A DNA stretch of 64,000 bases, from assembly GCA_002104905.1 (NCBI GenBank), contig MCFE01000289.1, forward strand, positions 1 through 64,000. Reading direction: 5' to 3'. The notes under the pieces were generated by a model. That model was not told the DNA's origin. It searched no databases and saw only the letters and a program-made list of their open reading frames with translations. Both the position numbers and the translations under genes were made by a program. This stretch comes from Basidiobolus meristosporus CBS 931.73. Lineage: Eukaryota > Fungi > Basidiobolomycota. Below are positions 45,075-54,756 of the stretch, piece by piece. The first letter of the stretch is position 1, and each line of letters begins with the position of its first letter.

Positions 45075-46797
45075 ATGACTGTTCGTCTCTTTACCCGTAT
45101 TAACTCACTCAGCACCTTCCGCTCCCAAGCCCGTAAATTGGCTTTGACCCCCTCTAGCCTTCGTTACCAAGGATTCAGAGCCCTATCTGCTGTTCCCGAA
45201 GGTAGATGTGAGCGATGAAAATTTTAATCCTATCCATTTATTAACATGATTGTAACGATTCTAGTCGCCGAGTCCTCCACCAGCAGCAAAGTTCTTACCC
45301 TCGAGAACCTTAACCCCAGAGTGAAAAGTGTAGAATATGCCGTTCGTGGTGAAATTGCCATTTTGGCCGACACCCTTAAGAATGTAAGTTCTCTATCCTT
45401 GGTGACTGATACCTAGGTTGGCTACTTATGTTCTTCTCCACCAGAAACTGGCCCAAGGTGCTCAATTGCCATTCAAGGAGATTACCAACATTAACATCGG
45501 TAATCCTCAGCAATTGAAGCAAAAGCCCATTACCTTCTTCCGCCAAGTCGCCTCACTGGTAGAAAACCCCGAACTTCTATCTGACGAAAACAGAGAGAAG
45601 GTTGAGGCTCTTTACCCCAAGGACACTATTGAGCGTGCCAAAAAATTGGTTGCCAGTGCTGGTGGCAGTGTCGGTTCCTACAGCCACTCCATGGGAATCC
45701 CATACATCCGTGAGCAGGTTGCCAAGTTCATCGAGAGGCGTGATGGTTTCTCCTCCGATCCCGATTCCATCTTCCTTACTGCCGGTGCTTCTCCAGCAGT
45801 TCAATTGGTTTTGCAATGCATGATTGACAAGCCAGAGGTTGGAGTTTTGATCCCAATTCCCCAATACCCTCTCTACACTGCCTCCCTTGCCTTGTTCAAT
45901 GGACAGCCAGTTCCTTACTACTTGGATGAGGAGAATGCCTGGGGAATGAACATTGCTGACTTGAAGAAGTCCGTGGATGAGGCCAGACGTAATGGTACCG
46001 ACGTTCGTGCACTTGTCATCATCAACCCTGGAAACCCCACCGGACAATGCTTAACTGAGGAGAATATGCGCGATGTCATAGATTTCTGCCAACGTGAAAG
46101 ACTTGTTCTCTGCGCCGATGAGGTCTACCAAACTAATATCTACGTCCCCGAAGAAAGACCTTTCCACTCATTTAAGAAGGTTCTCAAGAGCATGGGATCA
46201 AGCTACGAGAATGTTGAGCTCTTCTCGTTCCACTCCATTTCCAAGGGTATGATCGGAGAATGTGGTAGACGTGGTGGATATGTCGAGTGCACCGGAATTG
46301 ACCCCAAGGTTATCGACCAGATGTACAAGATCTCTTCTATCTCTCTTTGCCCCAATGTTCAAGGCCAGGTTATGATGGAGCTGATGGTCAACCCTCCTCA
46401 ACCTGGGGAGCCTTCATACGAACTATACAAGAATGAAATGGACGACATTTACACCTCCTTGATCAGAAGAAGCACCAAATTGGCCTCTGCCTTCAATGGC
46501 TTGGAGGGCGTTACCTGCAACAAAGCTGAAGGAGCTATGTACCTCTTCCCTCAAATCCGTCTCCCCGCCAAGGCCATCGAGGCCGCCAAAGCTGCTGGTA
46601 AACAGCCCGATGCCTTCTACAGCTTGGAGATGTTGAAGGAGACCGGTGTTTGCGTCGTCCCTGGATCCGGCTTTGGCCAGCAAGAAGGCACCTGGCATTT
46701 CCGTGCCACCTTCCTTCCACCTGAGCACACCTTCGATGAGTTCATCAACCTTCTTGAGAACTTCCACAAGAAGTTCATGTCTACCTACAGAGATTAA
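45075..46797 (+). CDS. ALT1: Alanine aminotransferase with mitochondrial targeting peptide, two introns
   Basis: VEYAVRGE, NIGNPQ, GSYSHSMG, PIPQYPLY, INPGNPTG, ADEVYQ, FHSISKG..GECGRRGG (PLP lysine), GAMYLFP, VVPGSGFGQ, HFRATFLP. Confidence 0.96.
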
Positions 46798-47094
46798 GCA
46801 TGGATCATTCTAGATTAACGCCATCAATCTTACTCAGGTAACATCAACACTGTCACATTCACACCTCTAGCATTTCACCCCGTATTCCCTACTGTATACA
46901 ATACCTACATACGGAATAAATACGATATTCCTTCGCCTTTCCAGCATTTGTTTATGAGCAATTTATTAAGCAAAGTCTAGTTTCAATCTCCCAAGAGCTA
47001 TATGTATATGTACATAGATCATATATTACGCTTTGGTATGCCGCAGAATTTTAGGATTCAAGTCTAAAACCCGTAACTGAGAGGGCCGTGGTGA

Positions 47095-47815
47095 TTAATA
47101 AAGACGTTGAGGTTTGCCCATGGAGCTCTTGATGTAAAGAGACTTGACGTTTTGCCAGTTCTTCTTCAGGAGGGAAACCAAGAAGTTGACTGACAACATG
47201 ATGTTACCGAGAAGTTGGTCCTCAGTCATTTGGACATGGCCGACCGCGACACCGAGGCAAAGAACCTTCTTAAGCTGGAACTTGATGGTGGAGCGAAGTT
47301 CGTTGGCCTTGTCGGACAAATTGTCGTTGTGGGAAACGGGGGTGGGGAATTTACCGGCCTTGTGGAGACCAGGGCCCAGAAGACGAGGGATTTGCTTAAT
47401 CAAAGCTTCAGAAGCAAGGAAAGCATCGAACTTCTTGGCGAGCTTCTTGATAAGCTTCTTGTTCTTGTTCAACTTCTTCAAATCCTCGACGGACATAGAT
47501 TCCAAACCTTGCTCCTTGGCTTGATCGCAGTGATGAGCATCACCAAGAACACAGACCGACATCTTGGGGCGGGGGACATTGGGAAGCTTGATGGTACCAG
47601 AGAAACGTTTGTCACGTTGGGGATCGTAGTTCTTGAGACCGATCTGGAGCTCGACGGTTTCGGTGAACTTACGGGTCTTCTCTTGGGATTCAGCCAAGAC
47701 AATGCGGACGCTCTCTCTCACGGCAGCGACGGAGACTTTGCTACTGTAGTATCGGGCGCATGTTAATGATGATTGATGGATGAACGCGCACCTAATCGAT
47801 ATCTGCGTACCTCAT
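47095..47815 (-). CDS. RPL1: 60S ribosomal protein L1/L10a (uL1), one intron
   Basis: ATGAG|intron|TAGC...; [63 protein letters not shown]. Confidence 0.98.
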
Positions 47816-48038
47816 GTTGTTTGTTGATTTGTCGAAACAAAAAAGGAGGCCGGCACACACTTATGCAAGGCAAATATTTAACCCTGCTGCCAATACACCA
47901 AGATAAACAATTTGTTTAAGAGCAGGGCAACGGCGCCCATAATTTGATTAACATAGTCGAAAAAAAAGAAAAAAACCCTTCCCTTGGGTTACAAGACCAC
48001 GCTGTACGTAGACTCTCCCCAGGACTCCCTAGAGCAAC

Positions 48039-48488
48039 ATGTTATTCTGTCCGTCGTGTTCGAACCTTCTGCTCATCTCCAACGACACCGGTTCGAACCA
48101 CTTTTACTGCCAAACATGTCCCTACATGTTTCCCGTGACCAGGACGGTGGGTGGTTTTGTCCAGCATTCCGGCGACATCGGCTCGAGATACTGATCTTTT
48201 CCTCTTCCAGCATGCCACCAGGAACGTGTTGAAGCGTAAGGAGGTCGATGATGTCCTCGGTGGAGAAAAAGCCTGGGCCAATGTGGATTCCATCGAAAGT
48301 ATGTCTTGTCCTAGTTGCCTGTTACCATTGGTTGCTTTGCTAAATCCCCTCGTGTAGCTTCTTGTCCAAAGTGTGAACATCCTCGCGCGTACTTCTTGCA
48401 GATCCAAATCCGTTCGGCCGATGAACCCATGTCCACGTTCTACAAGTGCTGTAACCATGAGTGCCAACACCAGTGGAAGGAGAAATAA
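48039..48488 (+). CDS. RPC11: RNA polymerase III subunit C11, two introns
   Basis: MLFCPSCSNLL...FYCQTCPY|...LKRKEVDDVLGG...|CPKCEHPRAYFLQIQIRSADEPMSTFYKC. Head-to-head with RPL1 across 223 bp. Confidence 0.95.
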
Positions 48489-48997
48489 TTCGCCAGCATC
48501 CGAGGGGCATCTACCACTAGAGAGACTAGGGCTTGGTGCATCCTCAGATAACTTAATGACTAAATCATGTTGCGATTTATTAAATGGAATGTACAGTAAT
48601 AAACATATGCACCAATGCAGGGCTGTGCCATTGAAGGATGGTCAGGAATGGCAACCATTCCAACTTGTTTGCACAAAGGAAGTCCTACCAGATTTGAGAG
48701 TTCTTATCTGCCATGCAATTTCCTACTTATTGGCTTCCAGGGTACGTGATCGATTTGGGATGGGAATGGGATGGGAATGGGATTTGGCTAATTGAAAATT
48801 CATGGCTTCCTGTTTGGGCAAACAATCTCCATTAACCTTAACTCACACCGTCCCAGCCCAAGAATAGTGTTTATCCTTGCGCTAGGCTCTTCGTTTGTTT
48901 CCGTCCCTACTCGAGGCTTGCATCCATCCGAGCTTTTCTATGAATTCCGCAAGTGGAGTGCAGGCTGGTACTGCGTCTAGCAGTACCGATAGTGATA

Positions 48998-51391
48998 ATG
49001 GTTGGGGCGATGTTTATTCATTCAACTGCCACATTCTCCACCCAGATAATATGAGCTAACCTGAACATTTTACTTCTTACTATTCAAGAGTTCTCAAGGT
49101 GCCATGTTTGTTCCAAGCCCGCCTTATTCATGTGCAGCGCATGCGGCTCTTCTGTTCAGTACTGTTCGGAAGGGTGCCAAAAAGAAGACTGGCCACAGCA
49201 CATCCAGACTTGCAGGAGGATAGCTGAGACAAATCGAGACAGCGGTAGAATTCGCTTTACCCATTCCTCTGCACTCGAGAAACTATACTCATCGCTGCCT
49301 TTATTTCACACCAAGCAGATGCTTCAGATATTAGCCAGGTAGGCCAGCTCAGCGCTCGCGTTGCTATTCTCTTGCTTACAATTCCCTTCGACGTAGATGA
49401 CTTACGGCGACAGTCGACATAGCCAAGTTCCTTTCAACCAGAGCCCGCCTGTCGAGGATTCGCCGGAAGAGCAAAAAAGCGAACTTCAGTTCTACACGGC
49501 GCAAATTTACCAGATCATTAAACCTGTGCTCTGCTGCATCATACTCTCCATAGTGTGGGTCAAGATTTCGATGTCGGGGAGTGACTACCGGTCAGTATAC
49601 CCTAAGCGCTGCTAGACACACTAGGTTTAACGGCTTTCTTGTCGCAGACCGGCCCCATCTGGCTATGCAGTATACAACGAATCCGGAACCGGCTCCAGCT
49701 CCGATCGATTCGTGGGCTCTCTGTTGAACGCCTTGATCATCATTGGCCAGGTGGTAGTATCCACGTTCATCATTGTGTGTCTATTCAAGTTTGGATATAT
49801 CAAGGTAAATGCGGGGTGGCTTTGTGACTGTTTGTCTCCGTCTGATGAGCCTTCCCACTGTAGATATTGATCGGATTTTTCATTCTGGTTGTAACCACGC
49901 TACTGGGATTCATGGGATACTTGCTCGCATTGTAGGACCTACTGAGACGAGGCATATCGTTCCAACTGATGTTGATTTGGCCATTGTAGGAATCTCTTGC
50001 AGGTGTTCAATTTCGGCTTGGATTACATCACCCTTGTGTTTTGTCTCTACAACTTTGCCGCCGTCGGGCTGGTGGTGATATTCTGGAAAGGGCCGTTGCT
50101 GCTTCAGCAGATCTACCTGACCATCATGTCCTCGCTAATGGTAAGTGTGTGGGTGACTGCCCGTGGCGCTTTTGGCTGCTGACGATTCTCCCGATAGGCT
50201 TTCTCTCTGACTGGGCTTCAAGAGTGGACAACCTGGATGCTACTTGGGCTTCTGGCTATATGGGGTATGTCTTTCTTTTAATTGCATCTTGACGTATGCG
50301 CTGTGACGAATTCAATAGACCTTATTGCCGTACTTTGTCCATACGGCCCCCTGCGCATGCTTGTCGAGTCATCGAGAGAGCAGCAGAGAGATGTTCCGGC
50401 TTTACTCTATTCAGGCAAGTGACACTCCGCATCTCCAAAGTCGCCCGCCTCTGATCATCAGGCTAACCCATTCTTAGTGGGAAGCATCGTTTGGCTGATG
50501 GCAACAAATCTATCTGGATACGAACCGGTGCGCACCGGTAGCGACGAGTCTGGCGGCGGGCCATCCGAGTTGGAGTATTCACAATCCTCAGCCTCCCCCA
50601 ACCTTCGGAATTTGCATCCCAATTCCCTTTCTGCTGCGTCGTCCGCCCACCGTCCGTTTGATCAAGCCTCGGCTGCAAAGCTAGAGAACCCCTTCTTGGA
50701 AAGCACCGACTATCATCCCGATAGGCGAGAGATCAGCAGCGCCTCCACCAGCTCCACCAGCACTATCCTCGTCAGGCAATCCTCACTGATGCCTCGGGAA
50801 GAAGAGGTTCCTATGCAACCTCGGAGCGATTCTGAAAGCAACCTACTCTCCGTCTCTGGTGCAGCAACTACCCCCACTGGGAATCGGCAAGAACCCCCGG
50901 AGCCTGAAAACGGGGAAGATGGAGGTGAAGTGTTCTCCCATACGCACTTCCTTTCGAAAGCAAAGCTAACCCTTAACGGGACCATATGCAGATGAGCGAA
51001 GCGGGTTGAAGCTTGGCCTAGGGGACTTCGTGTTCTACAGCGTGCTGATAGCCAGAGCATGTGCGTAGGTTCAAGGAATTTATTGACAAGGACGATGTCT
51101 AAATCGTATTGCATTCTTCTGCAGCAATGTCCGATTGGATAACCACCATTTCGTGCTTGGTGGCCGTCATGACGGTTAGTACCTTGTTTAAAGTGGTCCG
51201 AGTGATAACTAACCTCCGATCATGGGCATTTCAAGGGATTGAACGCCACCATCTTTTTGCTGGCCATCGCGAGGAAGGCACTACCGGCGCTCCCGATCTC
51301 CATTGCCTTCGGAATACTGTTCTATTTTGTGTCCAGCATCATGCTTGTCCCATATGTCCAAGCACTTTCCATAGTTCAAATCATGATATAG
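48998..51391 (+). CDS. PSEN: Presenilin (gamma-secretase catalytic subunit, peptidase A22A) with N-terminal zf-MYND domain, multi-exon
   Basis: Presenilin hallmarks: IIKPV TM1, [26 protein letters not shown], acidic loop, [25 protein letters not shown]: [26 protein letters not shown]. In-frame splice path through micro-exon 49316-49338. Start codon (48998) tentative. Confidence 0.9.
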
Positions 51392-52208
51392 CTGGAAGTC
51401 TGGCTGCTTCCCCACCCCACCCCACCACAACTTCCATCTCCACCTCAACCCAGCAGTAATACTCCATAGATAGCTGGCCAAATTATTTCCAACCCGTAAT
51501 AAGCTATAATACAACCACTGCACTGATCCACCCTCACTCTACAGTTGTTTCTGCTTTTGACACGGGAGTCTCGCATCGCTGGTCACAGGTGAAATTAGAT
51601 TGTGTCCAGAATTCGAGCCCTATTGAAACCGAGGGGTGAGGGGTGCTTTATTGGTGGGTGTTGCCTTTCTCTAGGATGCTGGCCCATTCGTATATTGTGC
51701 ATCGCGGTTCCAGATCTGCTGTTCAGATGTCCTTATCCATCATGACGCTAACCAAACTGTAGTCAGCATCTGTTCATAGACGAGCCTGTATTGACCAAAA
51801 ATAGATAATTTCGGTGGTCATCTCTACATGAAACCTCATTTATTAATGGACGCGCTGAAAGCTTGGTCAATGTACTTTATATCGCCCACTAAGATGCGTA
51901 TCGAATACTGGTGGATCGATTGGACGCCTTCTCGCCATCATGGTTCAGCCACTGCCATCCACATTCCCATCGTTAACTTCGTCTCTCCGCCAACAGATCC
52001 AAACAATCGATCCTCACCAAAGGATTATCGGATAGATTATTTGCATAATTGAGGCGATCAATATGCCTGGATCTCGAAAAATATCCATTGTGCCCTTCTC
52101 TGTTTCAGATCGGATGGTGTGAGGCGGTTAGAAATCCCTTCAGACCGATGGTTCGTCTCCACATCAACTGCCACCCCACTTTGCTCCACACCTTATAACC
52201 CTTGACTC

Positions 52209-52632
52209 ATGGGAAATTCCTACCAAAAAAGAATCGCCGAGCTTGAGCGCCTAGAAAGAGAGAGCAAGGAGAAGGAGAAGCGTCGTGTCGAGTCACCTCC
52301 CCTCGACTTGCAAGAGCTTGATCTGACCACCCATTTCATGGAGCACTTCTCGGAATCCGAGTCGAACTTGCATTACGAAGAGCCGACCGAACGCATGCTT
52401 CGCCGCTTCCAGCAAGCTATAGAAAATCGGCACTTCCATCAACAACTACTGATCTCTCAAGCTGTGCTTCGTAGCCGCATCCGACACAGACTGGAGGTAA
52501 GTGGGGTATGGTCGAACCATGCAGCTTGACCCCCGACTGAGCAGGGTTTCCCGCATACTCTAGACCTCTGAGAATAACTTGAGCGAAAGGCGAGCCCGTT
52601 ATCCTGGGGACGCCGACATGGAGGAAGTCTGA
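52209..52632 (+). CDS. Hypothetical protein (coiled-coil N-part), possibly with upstream exons
   Basis: 106-aa ORF with GTAAGT donor at about 52497 and an in-frame downstream exon (TSENNLSERR...MEEV*). No recognisable domain. Confidence 0.35.
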
Positions 52633-53394
52633 TGCTGGTCCCCAGCTCCGACAGGGAAAACCTAGTTGGCGTGGCGTTCGCATCCATCCAGAGAACGGCG
52701 CTCCCGTATCCAAACGTTTCTTGTCCGCCCGCAACCTTGGTATTTCATGCTAAAGACCATATCTATCTAGGAAGTGTTACCCCTCCCCTCCCCTCCCCTC
52801 ACTTATTACCCTGTATTATTTGTATATTGATTCATACCTAAGCATGTTTTTTTGCTGAGCATTCCTATAAAATGACTTCACCACACTTCAACACATCTTG
52901 GCTGTTTCGTATGGATCATGTGGGCCGATTCCATTCTGTATTCCACCACGGTGTATATGAGGATGTCTCCATCCACAACCCCGGAACCGTAGAGTTCGGA
53001 GTGGCATATTCCGGATCTTTTCCTGTTTGAGGGAATTTCTCACGCTTGTCTAAATTTAGCCGTCAAACCTCGCATTTCAGATCCACCCCACAAACTAAGT
53101 GGTCGAGTGAATTACCCAGTGGAGCTGTTGTTCGCACCCACCGCGCACACTCGCCCCCGATTGACTGGTTCCCAAGAAGACTCTACCCACCTTAGCCAGG
53201 GTGAGACACGATCGTGGATATGGCAGTGGGGTAATTACCCGGGTCAGGCAGAGCGGGTGGGTGTAACCTAGCCTTTAAAAGTTAATTCACTTTTTTGTAC
53301 GCAGCGTGAAACATGCGGTTGATTCGGTGCTGCTCGGCCACCGCTATAAATCCCGCTCCACCGCATGCGACCACCTCATATCACTCATTCTGCC

Positions 53395-54756
53395 ATGGCG
53401 GATGCTTTCAGCGAGAAGGACGGTTTCAAGCCCACGATGAAGGGCGAAGGACAGGGGGTGGGCGTCGAGGTCTTCGAAGACATCGAAGGAACCACTTCTG
53501 CGAAGAAGGCGTTCCTGCTGTTGATCAAGGCCTTCGTTGGTACCGGGATCCTCTTCCTGCCCAAGGCCTTTTCCAACGGTGGCTTGATCTTCTCGATGAT
53601 CGTGCTCTCGGTGGTGGCAACCATCACGGCGGTGGCCATGCTGCTTCTGGTCAAGGTGCGACTTCAAGTCCCCGGGAACTTCGAGGACATCGGAGGGAAG
53701 CTCTACGGTAAACCAATGAAAATCGTCGTCATGACCTCGATCACCATATCCCAGGTAAATCTCTTCCGCCAACCTGTCTCCTCACGTCCCCCACCCCACC
53801 CTAACCTCTCCATCCATTAGATGGGCTTCTGCTGTGCTTATTTCATCTTTGTGGCCCAGAATCTATACGACCTCACCCACTCGTTGTCGAACTGTAGCGT
53901 AGACATCCCGGTGATCTATTTCATCCTGCTCCAGCTGGTGGTGTACATGCCCTTCTCCCTGGCCCGAAAGATCAAGGCGTTCTCTTACACCGCTTTGCTG
54001 GCGGATGTTTTCATCCTGATCGGCATCGTCTACATCCTCTACAGGGACATTGACAAGCTGACCACCGTGGGCACCGGGGACATCCAGCTCTTCAACAGCA
54101 AGGATTACCCGCTGTTCATCGGGACCGCTTTGTTTAGCTACGAGGGAATCGGCTTGGTGCTGCCCGTTGTCAACTCCATGAAGGAGCCCAGACGGTTCCC
54201 CGCCGTCCTGGCATGTGTCATCGTGTGTGCCACGGTGGTGTTCGTCGCGGTGGGTGCCATCTCCTACGCCGCCTTTGGCAACGTGACCGAGACGATCATT
54301 CTGATGAACATGCCAGTGGGTCACTCGATGACCATCACCGTACAATTCCTGTACGTATTCGCCATCATCCTGACCCTTCCGCTGATGCTGTTCCCGGCCA
54401 TCGATATCCTTGAGCAGGGCCTGTTCCGTAAGAGATCAGGCAGAGCCTCGACCATGGTGAAGTGGCAGAAGAACCTCTTCCGTATCCTCCTCTGCCTGGC
54501 GCTGGCCATGATTGCCTGGGGCGGCGCCTCGAACCTGGACAACTTCGTCGCCTTGATCGGCGGCTTTGGGTGTATCCCCTTGCTCTTCATCTACCCAGCC
54601 ATGTTCCACTACAAGGCGGTGGCGACCAAGCGTGTGTACAGGATCTGCAATGGGTTGATGATCGTCTTTGGCTTCGCCGTCATGGTATTCGTCACCTACA
54701 TCAGTATCCGAAGCTGGTCCACCGCCGAGGTGGTCAACCATTGTACAGCTCATTAG
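53395..54756 (+). CDS. Amino acid/auxin permease (AAAP) transporter, Avt3/Avt4-like, one intron (53755-53820)
   Basis: LLIKAFVGTGILFLPKAF..GG, Q.GFCCAYFIFV, GTALFSYEGIGLVLP...MKEPRRF, YAAFG, PLMLFPA, VALIG. About 11 TM segments. Confidence 0.92.

Follow-up and report, generated by a model that had tools for sequence, protein, structure and literature searches.

A probable fusion of a MYND zinc finger to the N-terminus of presenilin in Basidiobolus meristosporus and other fungi outside Dikarya

The question raised by this locus is whether a MYND zinc finger encoded directly upstream from a presenilin in the fungus Basidiobolus meristosporus CBS 931.73 belongs to the same gene as the presenilin and, if so, what the finger might do on gamma-secretase's catalytic subunit. 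The locus lies on contig MCFE01000289.1, positions 1 to 64,000 of which (hereafter the window) were analysed. A preliminary description, made from the DNA letters alone, had proposed that the finger is spliced in frame onto the presenilin. We conclude that the interval 48940-51391 (+ strand) is very probably a single gene of 13 exons encoding the protein ORX92166.1, a presenilin with a MYND finger on its N-terminus. The gene, the protein and both domains are already public (GenBank, UniProt), and it is a description of the architecture that appears to be missing.

The letters from 48700 to 51700 were read, and the ten exons of the presenilin body were assembled by hand. Joining 48940-49000 to 49089-49244, 49319-49338 and the ten body exons ending at 51391 gave a 563-amino-acid protein identical at every residue to ORX92166.1, the gene for which is recorded at 48940-51391 of MCFE01000289.1, a contig identical to the window and with the same coordinates. 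The body exons alone gave a 484-amino-acid product without stops. The body introns are 54-67 nt long and follow the GT-AG rule, with one exception, a GC-AG intron at 50415-50477 (donor GCAAGT at 50415), which is needed to match the deposited protein. The MYND exon has no in-frame ATG, and an upstream exon is therefore needed. A start at the ATG at 48998 and exons spliced from 48940-49011 to 49091 or from 48940-48952 to 49089 all failed to reproduce the deposited protein, and the junction of 48940-49000 with 49089 was chosen because it was the only one to do so and its donor is conserved in Basidiobolus ranarum.

The in-frame connection between the two domains, as proposed in the preliminary description, was thus recovered, through a micro-exon that restores the frame from the MYND exon into the presenilin body, but three of the boundaries originally given required correction. 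The ATG at 48998, from which the gene had been taken to start, runs across the end of exon 1 and is not in frame, the true start being the ATG at 48940. The MYND exon begins at 49089, after an AG at 49087-88, rather than at 49091. The micro-exon had been described as 23 nt long and starting at 49316, and is 20 nt long (49319-49338) in ORX92166.1. The 23-nt form would also be in frame, adding one Ala, and it was rejected: its upstream AG is replaced by AAT in B. ranarum. It is possible that it occurs as a minor NAGNAG variant. The micro-exon is preceded by a tandem NAGNAG acceptor (AAG/CAG, 49313-49318), only the 20-nt site of which keeps its AG in B. ranarum.

The identity of the N-terminal domain was assessed by a Pfam profile search run on single-exon translations, with E values of up to 0.1 retained; later comparisons made use of the deposited protein. 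The translation of 49091-49243 matched zf-MYND (PF01753) over the whole profile (positions 1-39 of 39), scoring 42.4 bits (cut-off 22.7; E 7.2e-11). The corresponding pattern, C-x2-C-x7-C-x2-C-x6-C-x3-C-x7-H-x3-C, at 49100-49213 (+), was unique in the 64-kb window and absent from 100 shuffles of the window. All eight zinc ligands (C25, C28, C36, C39, C46, C50, H58 and C62) are present, and the finger in exon 2 is complete, as initially described. In an alignment of 48 fungal orthologues, C36, C39, Y45, C46, C50, Q51, W55 and H58 of the finger were invariant, and C25, C28, A32, S47 and C62 were conserved in at least 90%. Few gaps were needed to align the finger, the CQxxDWxxH stretch included, with the MYND structures of DEAF-1 (E 2.3e-5) and ETO (E 8.6e-5). 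In an AlphaFold2 (AF2) model built on an alignment, residues 21-70 had predicted local distance difference test (pLDDT) values of 90-94, with residues 34-36 and 40-45 forming strands and residues 48-61 a helix; the model contains no zinc. The predicted fold is that of a MYND finger, in which a beta hairpin and a helix surround two zinc ions. The finger of chytrids, Mucoromycota and Glomeromycota is followed by a motif, RG.xAQ(I/V)IN, that Basidiobolus lacks.

The remainder of the protein has the characteristics of a presenilin. Matches to the Pfam Presenilin profile (PF01080) were colinear over the later exons, spanning profile positions 2-408; four single exons each scored above the cut-off of 34.3 bits, and PF01080 is on record for the whole protein. 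The aspartate of the sixth transmembrane helix (TM6), D292, lies in AIWD ([YW]D motif), its codon being split between 50264 and 50319-50320. The second catalytic aspartate, D484, lies in GLGD (GxGD motif, TM7; 51015-51026), and PALP (the PAL motif before TM9) is encoded at 51284-51295. These three elements, noted in the preliminary description, were all confirmed, and W291, D292, G481, G483, D484, P529, A530, L531 and P532 were invariant in the 48 orthologues. The protein matched human presenilin-1 (PS1), known from gamma-secretase structures, with an E value of 2e-73, and presenilin-2 (PS2) with an E value of 1e-68. Nine transmembrane helices are predicted, the AF2 model containing helices at residues 102-139, 161-191, 195-225, 231-250, 255-274, 278-297, 482-496, 500-524 and 530-558, mostly with pLDDT values of 85-95, and a disordered linker (78-94) and loop (337-476, pLDDT <50). 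Residue 436 of this otherwise unalignable loop (exon 10, 50478-50924) is a conserved Leu, replaced by Met in Basidiobolus; in Mucor, for example, the surrounding sequence is DGFMRLPDDS, in Glomeromycota GEEIPLSEN and in Mortierella RDxIELRER. Signal peptide peptidases belong to the same protease clan and share the YD/GxGD/PAL logic, and such GxGD proteases have been kept by Dikarya; they have the opposite membrane orientation and no partner subunits. The exon translations matched Presenilin and, in Pfam at E values of up to 0.1, no signal peptide peptidase family. The gene is not, therefore, a signal peptide peptidase.

We aligned the 5' part of the gene with that of its B. ranarum orthologue, which encodes a protein 76% identical and lies in the same gene neighbourhood. 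Exons were 66-71% identical and introns 27-44% identical. The indels in exons were of 6 and 9 nt, both multiples of three, and intron lengths varied freely; the codons that differed comprised 58 synonymous and 35 non-synonymous changes. The ATG and donor of exon 1 are conserved (the donor being GTTAGG in B. ranarum). Both species have a micro-exon of 20 nt flanked by a conserved AG and a conserved GT, and the adjacent introns have diverged in length and sequence. The B. ranarum protein on record is built with the homologous junctions. The codon at 49397-49399, an ATG in B. meristosporus at which a presenilin without the finger might have started, reads ATA in B. ranarum, where no further in-frame ATG occurs until after TM1; the presenilin body cannot, therefore, start alone in this species. 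Transcripts were available for a relative, Lichtheimia ramosa, in the form of four spliced contigs assembled from sequencing runs, from which seven introns had been removed relative to the genome. Each of these contigs encodes the whole MYND-presenilin of 597 amino acids, with an in-frame stop and 84-183 nt of 5' untranslated region upstream from the MYND start. The two domains are thus jointly transcribed in one mRNA in Lichtheimia. Uninterrupted open reading frames (ORFs) with both domains were found in two further organisms.

The preliminary description had suggested a search for the co-occurrence of the two domains in early-diverging fungi. Both PF01753 and PF01080 were on record in 82 of the 120 best database relatives, and the organisms named as sources among these 82 were all fungi, belonging to the Zoopagomycota, Mucoromycota, Mortierellomycota, Glomeromycota, Chytridiomycota and Blastocladiomycota, together with an aphelid. 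The fusion is not special to this organism, and is the way in which fungal presenilins are ordinarily built. No finger was present in the presenilins recovered from animals and choanoflagellates, and a look-up in the ESM Atlas returned plain presenilin clusters only. A quick maximum-likelihood tree of the presenilin core, inferred with the MYND columns excluded, tracked the fungal phyla, and the deepest split among fungi separated two groups that both contained MYND-bearing proteins. MYND-less chytrid entries nested among MYND-bearing ones, and the possibility that they constitute an old second presenilin lineage was rejected in favour of truncated models or recent losses. Across the fungal, aphelid, animal and choanoflagellate presenilins recovered, the simplest reading is a single early gain of the finger on the fungal side, followed by vertical descent. 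According to one paper (PMC10406608), fungi other than Dikarya, Olpidium and the Rozella-microsporidia clade have kept gamma-secretase, in agreement with the earlier statement that the Dikarya model fungi lack it. One Cokeromyces recurvatus protein and one ENA protein, both presenilin-like, fell outside the clade of fungal presenilins, on very long branches, and might be either divergent paralogues or the result of poor gene models.

Several points weigh against the interpretation of the locus as a single gene with this architecture. The search for sequencing runs listed no Basidiobolus RNA run, the RNA support coming from the relative Lichtheimia, and the two Basidiobolus species may have gene models that are not mutually independent. 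The ligand of the finger, its zinc binding, the topology and the complex partners are all putative. Moreover, 38 of the 120 relatives have no MYND match on record, although several of these entries start inside the finger or retain the post-finger motif and are therefore truncated models. In Gonapodya (G. prolifera) and Amoeboaphelidium occidentale, the 3 kb flanking the gene on each side contained no MYND-coding stretch, indicating that the finger is dispensable in some lineages; these two cases are likely to be lineage-specific losses, and A. protococcarum does carry the finger. The deposited model might also be thought to merge two units, a small MYND-only gene or upstream ORF and a plain presenilin translated from the ATG at 49397. 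Exon 4 does open with this ATG, retention of intron 2 would keep the frame open as far as the stop codon at 49340-49342, GTAGAA and GTAGGC are weak as donors, and micro-exons of 20 nt are unusual. However, only 55 nt would separate the two units, and GTAGGA serves as a donor inside the presenilin body of the same gene. The ATA codon of B. ranarum, with no other in-frame start before TM1, and the conservation of the micro-exon and its splice sites between introns that are not conserved are also difficult to reconcile with a merger, as are the presence of the same architecture in 82 relatives and the spliced Lichtheimia transcripts, which encode the two domains in a single ORF. Taken together, the B. 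ranarum comparison, the distribution and the Lichtheimia transcripts render two separate units very unlikely indeed, and we retain the single fused gene.

The N-terminus of presenilin faces the cytosol and MYND fingers are protein-docking modules. The finger would thus be located on the cytosolic face of the membrane, where it is predicted to fold around two zinc ions, with a flexible linker of some 30-40 residues tethering it to TM1. The best reading of the sequence is that it constitutes a cytosolic docking module on the catalytic subunit of a fungal gamma-secretase, and the built-in cytosolic adaptor envisaged in the preliminary description is plausible. The CQxxDWxxH face is shared with the peptide-binding fingers of DEAF-1 and ETO, and Q51 and W55 are invariant in the 48 orthologues; the finger presumably, therefore, still binds something. 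A canonical PxLxP ligand in cis was considered and rejected, as the Basidiobolus protein contains no PxLxP motif and such motifs are rare in the loops of the orthologues (5 of 48, versus 1.5 expected by shuffling). A partner in trans is therefore likelier than self-binding, and we slightly favour, over the other roles considered for the finger, the docking of a proline-motif partner, which might be a substrate tail, a regulator or a chaperone. It had also been suggested that a MYND fragment might be released on cleavage. The autoproteolysis of PS1 cuts the loop after TM6, and the conserved ALLYSV..VW.MA stretch is kept in the Basidiobolus protein. A cut at this position would leave the finger on the membrane-bound N-terminal fragment, and a free MYND fragment is not, therefore, expected. 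In a more specific proposal, which we consider unlikely, the finger would be a cytosolic receptor on the catalytic subunit, choosing substrates or a regulator by proline motifs of their cytosolic tails; it would have had a single origin, on the fungal side and later than the divergence from animals and choanoflagellates, and would have been lost together with the complex in Dikarya. Were this the case, substrates would be chosen from the cytosolic side, a mode that the animal enzyme does not have.

Docking in trans must be weighed against two other roles. The finger might work within the enzyme itself, either by docking onto the protein's own loop or by recruiting folding or assembly factors (HSP90 co-chaperones of the FKBP38 type) during maturation of the complex. 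In PHD2 and ZMYND10, the MYND finger recognises PxLxP motifs in HSP90 co-chaperones, which provides a lead in this direction, and mammalian presenilins reportedly interact with FKBP38 (Wang et al. 2005). A single Leu/Met position following acidic residues is conserved in the loop of about 80% of the 48 orthologues, and the AF2 model contains a two-residue bridge at 437-438 in this otherwise disordered region. Against such a role, the pairing partner of this bridge could not be read, and the scarcity of PxLxP motifs described above provides no evident ligand in cis. The prediction of a complex between the finger (residues 15-80) and the loop (residues 415-460) with zinc gave a score of 0.03, which counts neither for nor against this role. 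Action within the enzyme seems improbable, though it deserves more weight than a role lying mainly outside the four-subunit gamma-secretase, in which a presenilin acting alone or independently of proteolysis would use the finger as a scaffold. Protease-independent functions of presenilin have been discussed for other non-animal lineages, and what was read of this genome, in which the partner subunits would be encoded, is the 64-kb window. However, the invariance of both catalytic aspartates, GLGD and PALP in the 48 fungal orthologues argues for retained proteolysis, and non-Dikarya fungi are stated to have kept the entire gamma-secretase complex (PMC10406608). We consider such a role to be quite unlikely, and docking in trans on a proteolytic complex remains the reading that we prefer.

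The features of the gene are listed below, with the evidence for each.

Positions in the window of the exons and 5' introns of the MYND-presenilin gene
Feature	Position	Strand	Evidence and remarks
Exon 1: start codon and 20 codons, low-complexity N-terminus	48940-49000	+	Donor GTTGGG at 49001; match to ORX92166.1; 66% identity to B. ranarum
Intron 1, 88 nt, GT-AG	49001-49088	+	CTAAC branch-point-like site at 49055; 113 nt in B. ranarum, 44% identity
Exon 2: MYND zinc finger (finger proper 49100-49213)	49089-49244	+	Pfam PF01753, E 7.2e-11
Intron 2, 74 nt	49245-49318	+	Donor GTAGAA, tandem acceptor AAG/CAG; 43% identity to B. ranarum
Micro-exon (exon 3), 20 nt	49319-49338	+	With one base of exon 2 encodes D-A-S-D-I-S-Q; required for match to ORX92166.1
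Intron 3, 58 nt	49339-49396	+	Donor GTAGGC; 88 nt in B. ranarum, 27% identity
Exon 4: linker (predicted disordered), pre-TM1 helix, TM1	49397-49590	+	Pfam Presenilin profile positions 2-28; first codon ATG, not a conserved start
Exon 5: post-TM1 loop, TM2	49648-49804	+	Pfam Presenilin profile positions 42-88
Exon 6: TM3	49864-49931	+	Spliced model
Exon 7: TM4-TM5 region, WKGPLLLQQ	49990-50140	+	Pfam Presenilin profile positions 113-161, E 1.3e-15
Exon 8: TM6; last base is the first base of the catalytic Asp292 codon (AIWD)	50198-50264	+	W291 and D292 invariant
Exon 9: remainder of the Asp292 codon through ...ALLYS	50319-50414	+	Pfam Presenilin profile positions 186-217, E 1.2e-10
Exon 10: large cytosolic hydrophilic loop, predicted disordered	50478-50924	+	No Presenilin match; pLDDT <50 for residues 337-476
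Exon 11: TM7, GLGD (51015-51026), catalytic Asp484	50992-51060	+	Pfam Presenilin profile positions 329-349
Exon 12: TM8	51125-51174	+	Spliced model
Exon 13: TM9, PALP (51284-51295), stop codon	51236-51391	+	Pfam Presenilin profile positions 368-408, E 1.8e-14

A search of a library of representative proteins with exon 7 returned a 563-amino-acid protein that was 100% identical over this exon. Its cluster contains two GenBank proteins of B. meristosporus CBS 931.73, ORX85883.1 and ORX92166.1, the first differing from the translation of the window by one residue (D100E). The second copy lies on MCFE01000583.1, which is 99.42% identical to the window over 8452 nt (window 45945-54365) and shares the neighbouring genes; the duplicated neighbourhood comprises an aminotransferase, a ribosomal protein L1 family member, an RPB9-like zinc ribbon, the MYND-presenilin, a 106-amino-acid ORF and an amino-acid transporter. 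Such copies must be either haplotigs or the product of a very recent duplication. About 2.5 copies of a short tandem repeat, GGGATGGGAAT, are present at 48757-48786, approximately 155 nt upstream from the start codon, in an intergenic region of 456 nt.

To our knowledge, gamma-secretase was long thought to be absent from fungi. A literature search combining presenilin with MYND or fungal taxa yielded, in the library searched, no paper describing or studying a MYND-presenilin, and the database entries bear automated names, "Presenilin" or "MYND-type domain-containing protein"; the preliminary description had rightly supposed that the fusion might already be present, unstudied, in the annotations. 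Some of these records look like annotation problems: two from Batrachochytrium salamandrivorans join ARM repeats to the MYND-presenilin, and are probably merged gene models, and a Mucor velutinosus MYND-presenilin is named "37S ribosomal protein S27". The protein is thus a conserved, undescribed variant of a well-known enzyme. The presence of the finger on the catalytic subunit in most of the presenilin-bearing fungi recovered points to a specific cytosolic partner, the identity of which would provide a direct route to the substrates or regulators of the fungal, and perhaps ancestral, presenilin. The architecture therefore offers a handle on the function of gamma-secretase in fungi.

The finger resembles the MYND fingers of DEAF-1 (2JW6) and ETO/CBFA2T1 (2OD1, 2ODD) in the pattern (C4-C2HC) and spacing of its ligands and in the CQxxDWxxH face of its helix. 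It differs from them in its position and context, as the DEAF-1 and ETO fingers are C-terminal, in soluble nuclear co-repressors, whereas that of Basidiobolus is N-terminal, tethered to a polytopic membrane protease and without PxLxP in cis. The other non-Dikarya MYND-presenilins (Lichtheimia ramosa LRAMOSA07437, Mucor, Mortierella, Rhizophagus, Batrachochytrium and Allomyces) have the same two-domain architecture and are 39-79% identical in the aligned set. In these fungi, the linker between the finger and the pre-TM1 motif ranges from 23 to 161 residues; that of Basidiobolus is split by the 20-nt micro-exon and is not preceded by the RG.xAQ(I/V)IN motif of many of its non-Dikarya orthologues. 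Human PS1 (PDB 5A63, 6IYC and others) is, like the Basidiobolus protein, a GxGD aspartyl intramembrane protease with nine TM helices (predicted here). The two proteins have in common the TM6 Asp, GLGD and PALP, as well as the WKGPL.LQQ and CP.GPLR blocks, and in both the large cytosolic loop is disordered. This loop is longer in Basidiobolus and cannot be aligned with that of PS1, and the residue before the TM6 Asp is an invariant Trp (WD) in the fungal set, versus Tyr in PS1. Finally, the N-terminus of PS1 is disordered, whereas that of the Basidiobolus protein consists instead of a MYND finger, predicted to be folded, and a linker.

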